A stretch of DNA of 63,765 nucleotides, counting the filler, from Salisapilia sapeloensis CBS 127946 (taxonomy: Eukaryota > Protista > Oomycota): the NCBI GenBank assembly GCA_023334545.1. It is 5 parts of 5 records of this genome, joined end to end, with 100 filler letters (N's around TTAATTAATTAA, not from the genome) between each part and the next. Parts side by side here need not be neighbours in the genome. Positions count along the whole stretch, not along the records: positions 15,285 to 30,527 come from JAADVB010000372.1; 4 more parts are not named here. One strand, written 5' to 3'. Every line of letters begins with the position of its first letter. Within the stretch, counting starts at the first letter, position 1. Shown here piece by piece: positions 23,345 through 30,299 of this stretch. The notes beneath the pieces were generated by a model. The model saw nothing but the letters and a program-made list of their open reading frames with translations. It was not told the origin of the DNA and did not search any database. Position numbers and translations under genes: made by a program.

Positions 23345-23849
23345 GACTAGCTAGTATAGAACGAACGAGATGGAGGAAGGAGGGAGCTCGCTTTATTCCT
23401 TCTTGAGTTGTCTCCTCTTGCACGCCGGACTTGCTTGGGGTAACGGCGGACGTCTCGTTGGCGGAAAATAGAGACACGCAGGACGCCAATTGGTGGAAAC
23501 GAGGGAGAGTCGGTCCCGTTACGAACTGCGATCGAGCTACCAGTTACGATCACGTACGTTGACAGACCTGGCGGCCGATCCGAGGGTTCATCTGAGAGTG
23601 CAACTAGCTACTCGCATGCATTGCTACTTTATTAAACGTCCATCACGACAGTAATGAGAGATAGGGCATTGCATACTTTCGATCTTATGAATCTTGTCAG
23701 CCATCACATCCTGTAAGTTAGCACTCCTGTATGATCTCCTCCGCCATACAAACCAAGTCAGATTCGACCTGCCGTGTTTACTAGACGCACATCCCCTTCC
23801 CACCCTCCCACTCTCCATCCGACAAGCATCACATCCGAAACGTGGCAGC

Positions 23850-25097
23850 ATGCGACTCCTTTCGCAGCCTCTCCTGCTGCTCTCACTCGCGCTCACGGTC
23901 CTAACGGCCCACGCAGTGCGACTGGACCATCGGTCGTTTGGGCCTCCCTTCAATCGAGTCGACGACAAGGACCGACGCATATTAAATGACTCGTGGATCT
24001 ACGGTGGCAACACCAATGTCAAACAGAACTTTGCGCGTCTTACGACCGATCGGCAAAGTAAACGCGGGTTTATCTGGTCGCGTGAACGAGTCGAGTCCGA
24101 TACACTCACGGCCATCCTCACCTTTCGTATCTCTGGCCAGGGCAAGTCGTGGTTCGGAGATGGCCTGGCACTGTGGCTCATCGACCGCAAGACGTACGTC
24201 CGAGGTCCCAACCATGGACTATCCGACAAGTACACTGGCATGGGTGTTATTGTCGACACCTTCCGCAACCAGGAGCATAAAGGTGGCCATAAAGACGTGA
24301 GCGTCCAGTGGAACGACGGCACCAAGGTCATGGACGACCTCACGGCGGAGCAAAAGGAAGGATGTGACGCTGCCATGCGATACCACGAACGCAGTGCGTC
24401 CTTCGATCCGGTCTTTAGCATGTCTAGACTCAAGCTCAAGATCGACGGGACGCGCGTGAGCGTCGAAGTGGACCCCGACGCCTCTGGCAAGTGGGTCCAG
24501 TGTGTCGACACGATAATCCCCTTACCAACCGACTGGTTGCAGTCTAGTACCATGGGCCTCACTGCCTCCACAGGGGCTTTGGCAGACAACCACGACGTCA
24601 TTAGCCTCGACCTATTCTCAGAATATGACGATCCGGACGTGAAAAAGCTCCGGAACGAAGTTTACAAGGACGTGAGTCCGAGAGGACTGACCCAGTGGTT
24701 GGAGCTGCCCAACTGCGGGACGTCCTGTATGATTGACATTTTGAAGAAAGAGATGAATAGCTTCCGGATTAGTGCCGAGCATCGGTTCACGGACTTGCAG
24801 GAGAAGACGGGGAACATGGTCGAGAAGCTCAAACGACGGGAGAATGAGAACGAACGGAGGGTGCGTTCGATCGAAAATAAGCTGAACAAGAAGGTCGATG
24901 CGGTCTTGGACGAAAGCGACAGTGACCTGGAAGTTGAAGTCGGCGCTCGTATCGCGAAGCAGTTGGAGGAGAACCCCGACATTACCGGAGGTGGCGGATG
25001 GAAGATGCCGTTCTTCTTTCTCTTTGCTATCCTCGCTGGCGTCGCATTCTTTGTCTACCGCAAGTACACGGCGTTAATGAAGTCGCATCTGCTCTAA
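23850..25097 (+). CDS. L-type lectin cargo receptor (ERGIC-53/VIP36/Emp47 family), paralog 1
   Basis: Signal peptide MRLLSQPLLLLSLALTVLTAHA from ATG 23850; FGDGLALW, VIVDTFRN and ASTGALADNHDV; CxxxC plus coiled-coil stalk; TM helix; tail KSHLL*. Confidence 0.92.
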   Translation: MRLLSQPLLLLSLALTVLTAHAVRLDHRSFGPPFNRVDDKDRRILNDSWIYGGNTNVKQNFARLTTDRQSKRGFIWSRERVESDTLTAILTFRISGQGKSWFGDGLALWLIDRKTYVRGPNHGLSDKYTGMGVIVDTFRNQEHKGGHKDVSVQWNDGTKVMDDLTAEQKEGCDAAMRYHERSASFDPVFSMSRLKLKIDGTRVSVEVDPDASGKWVQCVDTIIPLPTDWLQSSTMGLTASTGALADNHDVISLDLFSEYDDPDVKKLRNEVYKDVSPRGLTQWLELPNCGTSCMIDILKKEMNSFRISAEHRFTDLQEKTGNMVEKLKRRENENERRVRSIENKLNKKVDAVLDESDSDLEVEVGARIAKQLEENPDITGGGGWKMPFFFLFAILAGVAFFVYRKYTALMKSHLL

Positions 25098-25266: not shown

Positions 25267-26502
25267 ATGACTCGGCTAGTACTCGTGCTGCTAGCGTTGC
25301 TGGCTTTTACGAATGCCTTTGCTCGAGAGATGCCGCATTTGACGTTCCGAGAAACGTATGATGAAGTAGACAATAAGGGCAATCGGATGGTCAATAGTGC
25401 ATTCACGTACGGCGGATCGACCGAAGTCAAGCGGAATTTCATTCGACTGACGCCAGATCGTCAGAGCAAAAGTGGATATGTGTGGAGCAAAGACCGTGTG
25501 GGTCGTCGAGAGCTCGTCATCGACCTTGCGTTCCGCATCTCTGGTCAGGGCAAGCGCTGGTTTGGCGACGGACTCGCCTTGTGGCTGACGCACGCAGACA
25601 AGTATCAGGAAGGTGGGAACCACGGCTTTGCTGAAAAGTACTATGGCATCGGCGTCATCCTCGATACGTTCAAGAACACGAATCACAAGGGAGGTCACAA
25701 GGACGTGACGCTGCAAATCAATGACGGCACCAAGACCTTGGACGTTATTAACGAAGAGGAGAAGATCGGATGCGACGCTGCCTTCCGCTTCCACGCTAAC
25801 TCAGCGTCATTCGATCCAGCCTATAGCTCCAGTCGTCTTCGATTAAAAATCAACGGCAAGGAATTGAGTCTAGAAATCGATCCAAAGAGCCAAGGTTCGT
25901 GGGAAAAGTGCTACATGGGCACGCTTCCGTTCCCTCCGAACTGGCTGAACAAGGCCACTGTCGGTGTGACTGCATCCACGGGCTCCTTGGCCGACAACCA
26001 TGATGTCATCAAGATGGTGGCGTACGAAAACGCCGTGGCGCAGGGACTTCGGGAAGACGATGCAAGCGTCTGGACACACGTTGCGTCCAAAGACTTTACA
26101 GAGATCATGGACCGACCTGGATGTAACGACGTGTGCATGGTGGAGGCGTTGGAGACGTTTGTCAAGAACTTCCAAGTCACAACGGAGCACTGGTTGGAAG
26201 ACTTGAAAGAGAAGACGAAGACGGCGGTGGCGAAACTAAAGGAAAAGGAAGAGATGAACCAGGAAAAGATCAACCAGCTCATGGACCGCATTGGGAAGAA
26301 GGTGGACACAAAGGTCGGGAAGAAAATGGCCGATGTCCAGAGCAAAGTGGACTCGAAGATCGCAGAGGATGTCGAAGGCGAAGTCCGATCAGCACAAAGT
26401 AGCTGGCGACTACCCTTCTTCTTCCTGTTGCTGGCGTTAGGTGGTGCCGGTACGTTTGCCTACCGCAAGTACCAGCGCCTTGTTAAGAGCCATCTCTTCT
26501 AA
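25267..26502 (+). CDS. L-type lectin cargo receptor (ERGIC-53/VIP36/Emp47 family), paralog 2
   Basis: Signal peptide; FGDGLALW, VILDTFKN and ASTGSLADNHDV; CxxxC plus coiled coil; TM helix; tail KSHLF*. Confidence 0.92.
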   Translation: MTRLVLVLLALLAFTNAFAREMPHLTFRETYDEVDNKGNRMVNSAFTYGGSTEVKRNFIRLTPDRQSKSGYVWSKDRVGRRELVIDLAFRISGQGKRWFGDGLALWLTHADKYQEGGNHGFAEKYYGIGVILDTFKNTNHKGGHKDVTLQINDGTKTLDVINEEEKIGCDAAFRFHANSASFDPAYSSSRLRLKINGKELSLEIDPKSQGSWEKCYMGTLPFPPNWLNKATVGVTASTGSLADNHDVIKMVAYENAVAQGLREDDASVWTHVASKDFTEIMDRPGCNDVCMVEALETFVKNFQVTTEHWLEDLKEKTKTAVAKLKEKEEMNQEKINQLMDRIGKKVDTKVGKKMADVQSKVDSKIAEDVEGEVRSAQSSWRLPFFFLLLALGGAGTFAYRKYQRLVKSHLF

Positions 26503-26643
26503 CTTCAATGAAATGACCTTCATCCTGATCTTTATTCCATCCCGTTGATGACGCAATATAGGTGATCTGTAGGAAGGTTATAGGTAGGACAGGACGTCAA
26601 CTTGTCGGACAAGAGACAGAGGATCGAAGCTACCAAAATAAGA

Positions 26644-28077
26644 ATGGGCAAAGGCGTCGCGCTGACCTTGCTCGTGGCGCTCGTGGCGCTCTACTTTGGC
26701 TTGTGGGGAGACTTGGACGCATCCACGAGTCTCACGTATACCCATCGGTCCTTGTCAGACCTCGCGACGGGCGCTAAACACGTGACAATATATAAAAATG
26801 GGTTTTCCACGGGCGGCGTCGAGATAGAGCTCAACCCGAAGTTGTCCGGGAAGGACGGCGAGGAGTTAGCCAAGTACCTTTCGCAGTTCGTTCAGGTCGA
26901 AACGCTCAAGACGAATGCGACCAACCCTATGGCTGACCGCGTCTTTAACGGTGCTGGTCGACGCATCGATTCGTTCGACTCGATCCAGTCCAACGACAAG
27001 CTGTACCTGGTTGCGCCCGGTCTTCACTTTGTCTATCCGTTCATTCATCTTGGCCACAAAGTGTATCTGCATCCAGAGGACAGTCCGACGGACCAACCGG
27101 TCGTTCTTGAATCTCTCTCCGAGTCCCCACGTACGTTCAAAGTGCATCATTTTCTATCGGAAGAAGAAGCAGATAGGCTCGTGAAGCGCATTTTGGAGAT
27201 TGACGATGACGACAATAAGTTACAACGGTCTCGGGTTGGCCATGGCAAGGGAGATCGTCGAGAATCCAACATTCGTACGAGCGAGAACGCCTTTGACACG
27301 ACCTCTCCGGCCGCCGTAGCTATTCGGAAGCGTGTGTTTGATGTCCTTGGTCTTGGAGACTACAAGCCAGACATGTGCGACGGCCTCCAACTCCTTCGTT
27401 ACCAACAGCGGCAAGCATATATCGCACATAATGACTACTTTGGTGTGAATTCGAGTAAAGACAATTGGAATTTTGACCCGTCTACAGGTGGCTCCAACCG
27501 CTTCGCAACTGTCTTCCTCTACCTTTCGGACGTGGACAAGGGTGGTCAGACAGTCTTCCCATACGCGGAAATGCCGGAAGGGCATGCGCATCCGGTGGAG
27601 GCAACTGCATATGAAGAGACCGCCAAGGAGCTGTTCGAGAGCTCCAGTTGGGAGTACGACATGGTCCAGAAATGCTACTCCAAGCTAGCGTCCTACCCGA
27701 AGAAGGCGAACGCCATCCTATTCTACAGCCAGAAGCCGAATGGAGAGCTCGACCCTCGCTCATTCCATGGCGGATGCCCTGTCCTGGAAGGCACCAAGTG
27801 GGCTGCCAACCTCTGGGTGTGGAACAAGCGGCGCTATGGCCTGGACCAGAACAAGAAAGACAAATTTGAACTGGTCTTTAAGAACACCAGTCCCCGCCCA
27901 GTCGATCTGTTCTGGTCGTCTACGAAAATGATCACACTCAATGCTGGAGAGGACATCCAATACACGACGTACCACGGTCACAAGTGGAGAATCATGGATG
28001 GCGACAAGGAGTTAATGACGTATGTTGGTGATTTCAACAAAGGAGACCATCAGGAGATACTTGTACCACTCGAGTAA
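26644..28077 (+). CDS. Prolyl 4-hydroxylase (2OG-Fe(II) dioxygenase) with signal anchor, DCX-like N-domain and VHL-like C-domain
   Basis: Hydrophobic N-terminus from ATG 26644; HFLSEEEA, IRTS, LQLLRYQ, HND (HxD), RFATVFLYLSDVDKGGQTVFP and HGGCPVLEGTKWAANLW are P4H motifs. Confidence 0.9.
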   Translation: MGKGVALTLLVALVALYFGLWGDLDASTSLTYTHRSLSDLATGAKHVTIYKNGFSTGGVEIELNPKLSGKDGEELAKYLSQFVQVETLKTNATNPMADRVFNGAGRRIDSFDSIQSNDKLYLVAPGLHFVYPFIHLGHKVYLHPEDSPTDQPVVLESLSESPRTFKVHHFLSEEEADRLVKRILEIDDDDNKLQRSRVGHGKGDRRESNIRTSENAFDTTSPAAVAIRKRVFDVLGLGDYKPDMCDGLQLLRYQQRQAYIAHNDYFGVNSSKDNWNFDPSTGGSNRFATVFLYLSDVDKGGQTVFPYAEMPEGHAHPVEATAYEETAKELFESSSWEYDMVQKCYSKLASYPKKANAILFYSQKPNGELDPRSFHGGCPVLEGTKWAANLWVWNKRRYGLDQNKKDKFELVFKNTSPRPVDLFWSSTKMITLNAGEDIQYTTYHGHKWRIMDGDKELMTYVGDFNKGDHQEILVPLE

Positions 28078-28084
28078 GACAAAA

Positions 28085-28842
28085 TCAATTCGTTTTCTGC
28101 TTTTTACGACCAGAAAAAACGTTGGATAAAAGCGTGTGTTCCGTTGTAGACGTCTTCGAGGCAGGTTCTTTCTGGGCAAAACTGCGCCGGACGACAGGAC
28201 TGTCCGACGGTTCCTTTCGCTTCCGTTCGTCCATCTTGGAAAACTGTTTGGATTGCTGCACCCGGTCTAAATATGCCTCGTTCTCTTTCTTCGTCTGAGC
28301 GATCTCCATTCTCAACTTTTGCGATCGAATGCGCTGCTCGTAAGCTACAAAACATGATGAATGACGCACAAGAGAGCTGGTGGTACAAAATGACGTACCG
28401 ATCTTTTCTGTCAGGTGGTCCCACTTGAATCCACTGAGGTACTTGAGGTTCCACAGGTCTTCCCGATACCTGTCTTTCTTCTTGCCACCAATCGGCCGGG
28501 CGTTTAGCATCTTGGCAACGCGTTTCGCCACCTTTTTGTCAGCAAATTCAATCCAACCTTCCGTGAAATTCGTCCGACGGTTGCCTCCAGCCGCCACTCG
28601 CTTCTTGTGCTGCGCTTTGTCTTCCGGGACGAGGTAAATGCGCTCTACCTCGCCGTAAGCCGACAATAAGCTCCTCACCTTTTCAGGCTTCATGAACGGA
28701 GGCACACGACTTAAATAGACCTGGAATTATACATAATTATTTAGCTACTAGACCGAACTATCTGCTAAAGAGCAGTGCATACTACACCACGCCGCTGTGC
28801 CTGCTTCTCCAATGCCTCGAGCTTGTCCTTATTCACGTCCAT
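28085..28842 (-). CDS. ESF2: Pre-rRNA-processing RRM protein Esf2/ABT1, 3 exons
   Basis: [52 protein letters not shown]; introns 28721-28782 and 28345-28398. Confidence 0.92.
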
Positions 28843-28986
28843 TTCTTTTTCTAGTTGCTCGTATCACTGCCAATTGAACCACTTATGTGCCATGAACCAA
28901 TAATGTACCAATGAGTGCAAATATGCTTGATTGAAAATCCTAAATAACGCCTCGTCTCATTTGTCTACATACAAATGCAAAGCTTT

Positions 28987-29690
28987 TCATGTGAACATTT
29001 GCACAAAGTAGTTCGGATCGCTCGGTAGCTCTACCGAGATGCTGCTTGCCGACAAGGCGTTCGGAGTCTCTAGTGAATGGGTGCTCCATAACTCTGGTAT
29101 TTGCATGTCGGACGGGTCAAATGCAGCAAATAATTCGTCCAAATTGGAGGAAAGCTCCTTGATAGGCTCCGTCTCTTCATTCTTTATTGACGCGAAGTCG
29201 GAAGTAGTAGACCACGCCGAAATGGTCTCATCTGTGTCTGAAGGTGCAGAAGATTTAGACGTGGCCTCATCCGAGTCATTTTTATCATCCTCTTCGTCCT
29301 CTTCATCCGTACTGTGCGTCTTGTGGGTCTTTGCACCGTGACGGAGACCACGCATGTGCCTCTCGTGCTTTTGGCGGTACTTTTGTGCATGTGTCTACAT
29401 GATAAGGTTAGAACATTTCTCATCGGAGTTATTGACATAAAAGTTCGTACCATCGATTGTCTCGCGTTCTTCGTTCCAATGTATGCAGCAACTCGTTTCC
29501 ACGGTCCAGAGGGAAACAGCTCCATGGCCTCCAGAAACTTTGCATGCTCGGATGCTGTCCACTGCTGCCCCTTGTTGAATTTGCTGTTGCCACTTGCTTT
29601 CTTCACACGCCGACGTCGGATTTTAGGAGCCGTAGCATGGGTTGGCACTGCCTCAATAATCTCACTGTATACGCGAGACGTGATTGTCAT
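28987..29690 (-). CDS. Single-repeat Myb transcription factor (SHAQKYF class, THAQKYRQK variant), 2 exons
   Basis: WTASEHAKFLEAMELFPSGPWKRVAAYIGTKNARQSM, intron 29395-29450, then THAQKYRQK and an acidic Ser-rich C-terminus. Confidence 0.9.
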
Positions 29691-30299
29691 TTCCGATTTA
29701 GCAGTGTGTGTCTGCGCCCTTCGCGGCAAATAGGAGAATGAAGACAAACACACGGAGATGCCCATCTAAGCGTCAGTCACGGGTGCATCTCACTTCATTT
29801 AACTTGACTATAGATAGACCATCACTCTACGAATCCTAATGACGTCAGTACAGTAGATGGCAAGTAGCTTGGCAATCCAATTTCCAGCGTATCTGCTATC
29901 TTCTCTGCACGGAGACTACTTGATTTTATGGATGCGTTGATCCGCGAGCAGTCTTTCTGATAAAAGCAGGAAAAACTTGAGCAAAAACGGGGAATGGCTT
30001 GCTACTTGTAGCCATCGACTGTCGCCAGCAACCATGGCTTGTCTCATGTCGAAGTCAATGGCTACTGACTGTGTAGGATCGCTTACAGGTCATTCTTAAT
30101 CATAGCGTCTATCCCACGACTGGAATCTCGTGAAACCCAGAATCCTGGACATCCATTCACCGAAATTTGGTCAGTTCAACTATGGCTTGATCGATGATGC
30201 TATTATGCACATCTTCCCTCCGGCTGCCCCTCGTCACCTCTAGGTCAACAACAAAAGCCAAACGCAATTGCTGTTTCTACCCGTACGGCACATGACTAG

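Follow-up and report, generated by a model that had tools for sequence, protein, structure and literature searches.

A predicted secretory prolyl 4-hydroxylase from an oomycete ends in a VHL beta-type domain that may read hydroxyproline

Here we describe a gene of the oomycete Salisapilia sapeloensis CBS 127946 in which a prolyl 4-hydroxylase (P4H) is joined, within one reading frame, to a C-terminal domain that belongs to the VHL beta family, with the possible consequence that a single protein of the secretory pathway forms hydroxyproline and also binds it. The gene lies in a window of 63,765 nucleotides (the whole stretch of DNA that was analysed, filler included), and every feature given below is on its plus strand. 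From N- to C-terminus, the 477-residue product comprises a transmembrane anchor, a DCX-like domain, the P4H catalytic domain and a 75-residue VHL-beta-like C-terminus. Judging from sequence comparison and predicted models, we hold it about equally probable as improbable that the protein is a type II, ER/Golgi-lumenal P4H whose VHL-beta domain binds hydroxyproline and promotes clustered or processive hydroxylation. The likeliest function of the added domain would be the binding of hydroxyproline-bearing products on proline-rich secreted or wall proteins.

The coding sequence is complete and intronless (477 codons plus stop, 26,644..28,077); the continuous ORF to which it belongs has a TTG at 26,602, its first ATG at 26,644 and the stop codon at 28,075-28,077. 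The stretch 27,865-28,077, in which the fusion had been noticed, is the C-terminal end of this same continuous ORF. RNA-derived contigs (runs X3 and X4) span the gene from 26,547/26,574 to 28,344 with no internal joint, while splicing out the introns of neighbouring genes; the P4H-VHL gene is transcribed as one unspliced ORF.

The catalytic domain (residues ~157-393, 27,112..27,822) is a 2OG-Fe(II) oxygenase of the algal/plant (collagen/HRGP) type, recognised within the 477-residue protein by PF13640 (E 4.6e-11; 44 bits, the cut-off being 27) and by phmmer. Its closest solved counterpart is Chlamydomonas reinhardtii P4H-1 (2JIG/3GZE, E 2e-27; 2JIG at 1.9e-27), followed by the P4H of B. anthracis (3ITQ, E 4.6e-20), human C-P4H alpha-2 (7ZSC, E 5.4e-15) and P4H-TM (6TP5, E 3.1e-12); PHD/EGLN chains were absent from the phmmer matches of this domain. 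Alignment with the Cr-P4H-1 motifs places the Fe/2OG residues at H262 (27,427-27,429), D264 (27,433-27,435), H375 (27,766-27,768) and K385 (27,796-27,798), and these HxD, H and K motifs, common to both enzymes, are invariant in the orthologues. With the iron triad and the lysine for the 2OG C5-carboxylate complete, the protein is a P4H of the collagen/HRGP type with a predicted intact Fe/2OG site.

Ahead of the catalytic domain, a Kyte-Doolittle scan of the 477-residue protein finds a single hydrophobic segment and no other, a 19-residue span at residues 4-22 (26,653..26,709, maximum 2.08) that reads as an N-terminal signal anchor. Because a lysine precedes it and an aspartate follows, a type II topology is predicted, with the remainder of the protein in the lumen. 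Equivalent hydrophobic segments begin the orthologues P0001 and P0002, and relatives end in KDEL-like motifs (KEDL, HQEL, KEEL and ADEL); together, the anchor and these endings suggest placement in the ER/Golgi lumen. The signal-anchor topology is also that of plant type II membrane P4Hs, which hydroxylate HRGPs. Between anchor and catalytic domain lies a DCX-like (doublecortin/beta-grasp) domain (residues 41-134, 26,764..27,045), an addition relative to Cr-P4H-1 and the plant type II enzymes. In VIA-align it matches 2dnf at Z 10.8 and TgDCX (6b4a) at Z 10.0 (rmsd 2.3 Å over 83 residues), both from a shallow model with pLDDT of 60-83 in this region; Pfam offers a weak Ubiquitin_DCDC1 match (E 4e-4, under its cut-off). 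The first full-length AF2 model, built from three sequences, has pLDDT below 50 over residues 126-405 and was used for the two flanking domains only.

The C-terminal domain (residues 404-477, 27,853..28,074) corresponds to pVHL 64/67-154, and its relationship to VHL emerges with profiles. By itself it matches Pfam VHL (PF01847) at 19.0-19.3 bits (E 1.2e-3), under the gathering cut-off of 21 bits; a single-sequence phmmer search of the 85-residue tail against the PDB returned only a chance match to TBP, and a three-sequence profile reached a marginal E of 0.26. A word-index protein search with the tail alone recovered just two full-length relatives, the wider family being seen by an exhaustive search of representatives. 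If such marginal scores were all, one might suspect a chance resemblance to pVHL, a suspicion that we now consider exceedingly improbable, since the statistics of profile and profile-profile comparisons agree with both structure searches in pointing to VHL. PF01847 is the best Pfam family in all three orthologues (E 2.3e-4 to ~1e-3). A profile of the three orthologues (A2) found 184 proteins among 1.8 billion; it matched PF01847 repeat proteins at E 4e-31 to 1e-19 overall, and its best matches carry 9-10 tandem repeats (E 1e-29 to ~1e-31). With a 117-sequence profile (A3), pVHL was the only strong match in the PDB (E 7.4e-11), and hhalign of A4 with A5, against PF01847-positive domains, gave a probability of 99.4% and an E of 8.2e-22. 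The AF2 model of the domain (pLDDT 87) has seven strands; the best 50 Foldseek matches to it are all pVHL (probability 1.0, TM ~0.7), and a wide VIA search aligns it with pVHL at Z 10.2 (rmsd 2.7 Å, 75 residues, 27-28% identity, chain range 67-154), the next fold standing at Z 7.9. The same domain taken from the independent full-length model scores Z 9.8 against pVHL in VIA. Chance similarity was rejected on these profile, hhalign, Foldseek and VIA results, and the C-terminal domain can firmly be assigned, by sequence and predicted fold, to the true VHL beta-domain family. The fusion of a P4H to a pVHL-like domain proposed in the earlier note is thus borne out on both sides, as is its expectation that similar architectures already stand in domain databases: in the related P4H fragment P0113, both domains exceed their Pfam thresholds, VHL at 33.2 bits.

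The resemblance to human pVHL (beta domain 63-154; 1VCB, 1LM8, 1LQB), which reads the hydroxyproline of HIF-alpha, covers the family, the seven-stranded beta-sandwich and the equivalents of W88, S/T111, H115, W117, N78 and F76, and stops there. The ORF ends at residue 477, where the beta domain ends, and structural alignments to pVHL finish at residue 154; the alpha domain and the BC box that binds elongin C, both required for E3 function, are absent, as is the Cul2 box, and, unlike pVHL, this protein would not be an E3 substrate receptor and does not have the C-terminal helix that packs on the sandwich. pVHL is cytosolic and nuclear and acts downstream of a separate PHD, whereas the protein described here is predicted to be lumenal or secretory and is covalently fused to its hydroxylase. 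These differences bear on the suggestion, also made in the earlier note, of a HIF-independent oxygen-sensing module, taken here as a cytosolic sensing or degradation device in which the P4H and VHL domains of one chain would act like PHD and pVHL. The presence of both domain types in one protein is the sole point in its favour; against it stand the N-terminal signal anchor and the KDEL-like ends of relatives, a catalytic domain nearest to Chlamydomonas P4H-1 and collagen P4Hs with no PHD/EGLN chain matched, and a similarity limited to pVHL 64/67-154. The missing alpha domain and BC box, together with lumenal topology, make an E3-ligase or HIF-like oxygen-sensing role very unlikely, and with the non-PHD catalytic type added, we have dropped it as a candidate.

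What the domain might bind is best approached through its putative ligand pocket (27,913..27,987). In pVHL, the surface residues W88, Y98, S111, H115 and W117 make up the pocket for Hyp564. A HMMER alignment over pVHL 73-121, which independently reproduces the alignment first made by eye, pairs them with W424 (27,913-27,915), M429 (27,928-27,930), T442 (27,967-27,969), H446 (27,979-27,981) and W448 (27,985-27,987), respectively, and finds F76, N78, S80, P81, R82, V84, W88, T100, L101, G104, Y112, G114, H115, W117 and D121 identical. Four of the five pocket positions are therefore kept, counting the replacement of S111 by threonine that the earlier note reports; the fifth is not, Y98 being replaced by Met429, a change that the note leaves unstated. 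The loop before it, already noted as shortened, is five residues shorter than in pVHL (91-95 deleted), leaving a W88-Y98 gap of 4 residues as against 9 in pVHL and most family members. With this shorter loop and a methionine in place of Y98, the shape of the pocket may differ from that of pVHL.

Conservation among relatives supports a functional pocket. Two of the outcomes that the earlier note named as refuting its proposal, a fold unlike VHL and pocket residues that vary among orthologues, were looked for and neither was seen: all oomycete-type orthologues keep the equivalents of W88, S111 (as Thr), H115 and W117. Equivalents of W88, S/T111 and H115 are invariant in 12 of 12 P4H-type domains, and position 117 holds W in 10 of them and F in 2. 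Across the family (317-426 instances), N78 is kept in 96-97%, W88 in 81-89%, S/T111 in 89-93%, H115 in 76-83% and W/F117 in 97-99%, frequencies that are inflated by the use of profiles containing the pocket residues to gather the instances; these five are among the most informative columns, N78 being the most conserved. Positions 111 and 115, which bond the hydroxyl in pVHL, are lost together (phi 0.45, a coupling inflated by non-independent repeats and relatives), with an Ala/Gln variant in some repeats. Such a pattern can also be read as a structural signature, in which Trp, His and Thr would hold together a domain that reads no ligand and instead aids folding, oligomerisation, ER/Golgi retention or docking of a partner enzyme. 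The most conserved column is indeed N78, which in pVHL is structural and buried, and plant and diatom P4Hs carry a C-terminal ShK/toxin-like add-on where this protein has its VHL-beta domain, indicating a position that tolerates varied modules. Yet W88, H115 and W117 of pVHL are exposed pocket residues rather than core, and the coupled loss at 111 and 115, with Ala111/Gln115 in some repeats, looks like a switchable functional site; a purely structural role strikes us as improbable.

In the reading that we prefer, the VHL-beta domain would bind 4-hydroxyproline in peptides through the conserved pocket, whose walls would be Trp424 and Trp448 and in which Thr442 and His446 would bond to the hydroxyl. 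Bound product would then keep the enzyme on chains already partly hydroxylated, so that proline-rich secreted or cell-wall proteins would be hydroxylated in clusters or processively. Oomycete walls are classically reported as containing hydroxyproline.

The fusion partners of the domain elsewhere speak to its ligand in two directions. Several oomycetes (Thraustotheca, Hyaloperonospora) share the P4H-VHL fusion, as do other eukaryotic sequences, some of which carry a tandem pair of VHL-like domains. In bacteria, VHL-beta domains are joined to DPP-IV/S9 prolyl peptidases and to metallopeptidases, suggesting a proline-rich substrate context; others are found on sulfatases, SASA esterases, CBM5/12-bearing metalloproteases and LRR proteins, and the sulfatase, esterase and LRR fusions in particular admit another ligand, for example a sugar or unmodified polyproline. 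The domain could be a general binding module, either for unhydroxylated polyproline-II substrate, as is the peptide-substrate-binding (PSB) domain of animal collagen P4H, or, much like a CBM, for a glycan that is attached to Hyp or belongs to the wall. This would fit the bacterial partners just named, the absence of a conserved Y98 here, and the presence of CBM20/41 and other sugar-binding sandwiches (Z 5-7) below pVHL among the structural neighbours. Sugar binding, moreover, typically uses Trp-rich surface pockets. However, those CBM-like matches fall 2-4 Z units under pVHL at 6-14% identity, the residues behind the preference for the 4-hydroxyl in pVHL (S/T111 and H115) are kept and vary together, and the joining of the domain to a hydroxyproline-making enzyme and to prolyl peptidases favours ligands derived from proline. 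We regard a ligand other than hydroxyproline as rather unlikely, and hydroxyproline itself as the better candidate.

Comparison with better-known systems helps to place the proposed arrangement. Cr-P4H-1 is a catalytic domain alone, whereas a VHL-beta domain is added here. A likeness in working principle is offered by the animal collagen P4H alpha subunit, which likewise couples a P4H to a separate peptide-binding module, the PSB domain, that probably helps it to act on repetitive proline-rich chains. That domain is helical and TPR-like, precedes the catalytic domain and binds substrate polyproline; the module here, by contrast, is a beta-sandwich at the C-terminus, and its pocket is of a type that in pVHL prefers the product. 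Bacterial and protist PF01847 repeat proteins (for example P0003, P0006 and P0009) belong to the same family and share the conserved pocket columns. They differ in carrying 3 to 12 tandem copies, or fusions to peptidase, LRR, TIR, sulfatase or esterase domains, and in that the W88-Y98 loop of most is long, as in human pVHL, with tyrosine at 98. A literature search covering few subscription journals found neither a P4H-VHL fusion nor the function of a non-metazoan VHL-beta domain described, and no characterised PF01847 repeat protein. We tentatively extend our proposal, at somewhat less than an even chance, to the family as a whole: the VHL beta domain may be an ancient and widespread reader of 4-hydroxyproline, or of a close proline derivative, in secreted and lumenal proteins of bacteria and protists rather than a metazoan invention for HIF signalling. 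The P4H-VHL protein would then be the Rosetta stone that connects writer with reader, an enzyme by which hydroxylation would spread, in a feed-forward way and within the secretory pathway, along proline-rich wall proteins.

Oxygen sensing in animals centres on the recognition of hydroxyproline by pVHL, which most PROTAC drugs also use as their handle, and the pocket tends to be treated as a feature of animals. In oomycetes, this domain family and these pocket residues are joined to a predicted secretory P4H, and they occur, often as many tandem copies, in bacterial proteins, prolyl peptidases among them. If the pocket binds hydroxyproline, this protein would be a first case of one enzyme being both writer and reader of that modification, would suggest a route to clustered hydroxyproline blocks in wall glycoproteins, and would trace the pVHL reader back to a concrete and testable history before metazoans. 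The P4Hs of oomycetes are an expanded family that is thought to act on wall proteins, and they are mating-induced and linked to spore walls (PMC5999078); for this reason, the domain may matter for wall assembly in oomycetes, a group that includes important pathogens of plants and animals.

The plus-strand frame at 26602-28077 (first ATG 26644) is a single ORF encoding a 477-aa lumenal prolyl 4-hydroxylase (P4H) of the Pro-rich-wall-glycoprotein type, which carries at its 3' end a VHL-beta module (Pfam PF01847) with four of the five residues of the hydroxyproline (Hyp) pocket of human pVHL. The fusion proposed in an earlier note stands, with oxygenase and VHL-like domains in one ORF, the latter backed by profile and structure matches. 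The protein's sole hydrophobic segment, aa 4-22, has Lys on its N side and Asp on its C side and is therefore read as a type II signal anchor. The lumenal stretch that links this anchor to the catalytic domain (aa 41-134; 26764-27045, +) has a beta-grasp fold resembling that of doublecortin (DCX) domains (VIA Z 10.8 to 2dnf, Z 10.0 to Toxoplasma TgDCX 6b4a) and a weak Pfam match (E 4e-4, under its cut-off), an odd placement given that DCX domains are known as cytosolic microtubule binders. The 2OG-Fe(II) oxygenase domain (aa ~157-393; PF13640, E 4.6e-11) retains H262, D264, H375 and K385 of the active site, and among solved structures it lies nearest to Chlamydomonas P4H-1 (E 1.9e-27), followed in the comparison by the P4H of Bacillus anthracis, human collagen P4H alpha-2 and P4H-TM, which places it with the collagen/HRGP type rather than the HIF-PHDs. 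The lumenal topology follows from the N-terminal anchor and from the KEDL, HQEL, KEEL or ADEL tetrapeptides that end relatives (HQEL being the end of the homologue P0074). The protein stops at the end of its VHL-like domain (aa 404-477), with no alpha domain or BC box after the sandwich; together with the non-PHD catalytic domain and the lumenal topology, this makes an E3-ligase or HIF-like sensing role very unlikely, and the oxygen-sensing option raised beside the reader proposal is not upheld.

Taken alone, the window domain reaches 19 bits with the Pfam VHL model (E 1.2e-3), short of the cut-off of 21, and VHL is the top Pfam family for all three orthologues. A three-sequence profile searched against the PDB matches pVHL chains alone, though at E 0.26, and its alignment agrees with the one previously drawn by eye. 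Decisive for VHL homology is the exhaustive search of this profile against 1.84 billion representatives (E <= 1e-3), which returned 184 matches; the best are proteins of 1700-2000 aa with up to 12 matched stretches each, in which Pfam finds 9-10 tandem VHL beta domains (E 1e-97 to 1e-105), and single-domain matches such as P0088, P0105 and P0113 are significant in both directions. A 117-instance profile seeded by the window domain reaches human pVHL at E 7.4e-11, with no comparable match from any family other than VHL, and hhalign of twelve P4H-type tails against sixteen PF01847-positive domains gives a probability of 99.4% (E 8.2e-22).

Structure prediction points the same way. AlphaFold2, run on the 117-sequence alignment, yields a seven-stranded sandwich (mean pLDDT 87) for which all 50 top Foldseek matches in the PDB are pVHL (probability 1.0, query TM ~0.7, 22-25% identity). 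In a scan of 48,161 representative chains that does not depend on Foldseek, pVHL again ranks first (Z 10.2, with 75 residues of its chain range 67-154 superposed at rmsd 2.7 A and 28% identity), followed by a runner-up fold at Z 7.9 and CBM-like sandwiches at Z 5-7; a shallow full-length model repeats the match (Z 9.8). The predicted fold is therefore VHL-like, as had been suggested.

Residue correspondences from the HMMER alignment pair F412, N414, W424, M429, T442, Y443, H446, W448 and D452 with pVHL F76, N78, W88, Y98, S111, Y112, H115, W117 and D121; the W88-Y98 loop has 9 residues in pVHL as against 4 here. Among the twelve P4H-type tails the W88 and H115 positions are invariant, position 111 carries Ser or Thr without exception, ten tails have Trp and two have Phe at position 117, and Met or Leu predominates at position 98, Met98 with a short loop being essentially the form of the P4H-associated subfamily. 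Across collections of 317 and, gathered more permissively, 426 domain instances, the pocket-column residues occur at these frequencies: N78 (97% and 96%), W88 (89% and 81%), S/T111 (93% and 89%), H115 (83% and 76%) and W/F117 (99% and 97%), and Y98 (46% of the 317), values to be read knowing that the profiles used for gathering already contained pocket residues and that repeats and relatives are not independent. Sparsely filled end columns aside, N78, W88, 111, 115 and 117 rank among the most informative. With these caveats, the claimed conservation of the pocket in orthologues holds.

In the pVHL structures of Hon and of Min (both 2002), the Hyp hydroxyl is reportedly bonded by positions 111 and 115. 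These two are lost jointly across the family (phi 0.45, again over non-independent repeats and relatives), and Ala111 together with Gln115 is a recurring variant of some repeat proteins, where it may mark a second ligand specificity; instances in P0014, P0023 and P0075 retain W88 and W117. For the window domain itself, binding of another ligand, polyproline or glycan, is a possibility we entertain tentatively, and a structural or retention role, apart from any reading, seems unlikely; we put Hyp reading at about an even chance, which leaves little for the disfavoured readings.

P4H and VHL-beta are also fused in P0001, P0002 (Thraustotheca), P0013 (Hyaloperonospora), P0034, P0045 and P0051, and the fusion fragment P0113 exceeds Pfam thresholds for both domains. 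In the ESM Atlas, the closest structure cluster is a 69-member P4H family from Oomycota. P0066 and P0074 carry two tandem VHL-like domains C-terminal to the catalytic domain; they come from other eukaryotic, metagenomic sources and have Phe at the W117 position, and on its eukaryotic metagenome contig P0066 (L002:4001-5740) adjoins a PTEN-like gene. VHL-beta is widespread in bacteria, in 3 to 12 tandem copies in some proteins, one of them a 2000-aa protein with ten copies and an S8 peptidase gene alongside. Its fusion partners include reprolysin-type metalloproteases that bear T9SS tails, an M90-like peptidase, TIR with a Pro-rich linker, and UPF0489; structure search adds DPP-IV/S9 prolyl peptidases, LRR proteins, sulfatases and SASA esterases (Planctomycetota, Verrucomicrobiota). 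Examples of the family are P0003, P0006 (L001:6001-12003), P0009, P0026, P0129, P0055, P0119 and ESM Atlas clusters, and the pocket residues are conserved in bacterial VHL-beta domains too.

The best relatives of the window protein are oomycete sequences, among them Thraustotheca clavata THRCLA_04380 (55% identity), a JGI 'prolyl 4-hydroxylase' (58%), Hyaloperonospora M4BY24 and mainly Oomycota ESM Atlas clusters. This part of the sequence has the appearance of a compact eukaryotic genome, and genes around the P4H encode a protein kinase, a PDZ protein, two L-type lectins, and one RRM and one Myb protein. Neighbouring minus-strand genes are spliced in contigs from three public runs, which lack segments with minus-strand GT..AG ends at 28345-28398 (54 nt), 28719-28780 (62 nt) and 29395-29450 (56 nt), short introns in or beside the convergent RRM and Myb genes (28085-29765, -). 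Because these segments are removed there and a DNA run is without the three splices, we take the three runs to be RNA. Their contigs span 26547/26574 to 28344 with no joint inside, so the ORF is transcribed without splicing, in a single message; a contig gives neither strand nor expression level, and it continues into the convergent RRM gene. Only 8 nt separate the P4H stop codon (28075-28077) from the RRM ORF end (28085), and the 3' UTRs must therefore overlap. The P4H 5' leader holds a six-codon upstream ORF (ATG ACG CAA TAT AGG TGA; 26549-26566, +), inside the contig of run X3 (starts 26547) and outside that of X4 (starts 26574). Directly upstream on the same strand are two tandem L-type lectin genes (legume-like, ERGIC-53/VIP36-type; 23694-25097 and 25267-26502; PF03388, E 5e-34 and 9e-33), the second with a C-terminal TM segment; the early secretory pathway is common to both lectins and the P4H, which may be coincidence.

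As the earlier note had anticipated, the architecture can be seen in databases for some members, so that the discovery here is one of interpretation, not annotation. A literature search omitting most subscription journals found no account of a P4H-VHL fusion and no functional study of non-metazoan VHL-beta domains, bacterial included. P4Hs with an accessory binding module and VHL-beta readers are both known already; P4H-VHL combines the two kinds. Animal collagen P4H has a substrate-binding domain that is similar in principle, whereas the window protein would read product rather than substrate. Hydroxyproline is classically reported in oomycete walls. Oomycete P4Hs form an expanded, mating-induced family thought to modify spore-wall proteins (PMC5999078), and the substrates here are likely Pro-rich secreted or wall proteins. 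If the VHL-beta module is a Hyp reader, the scheme would be a writer-reader arrangement, in which the module would hold Hyp on products of its own enzyme, the catalytic domain would stay on partly modified chains, and contiguous Hyp blocks would be favoured.
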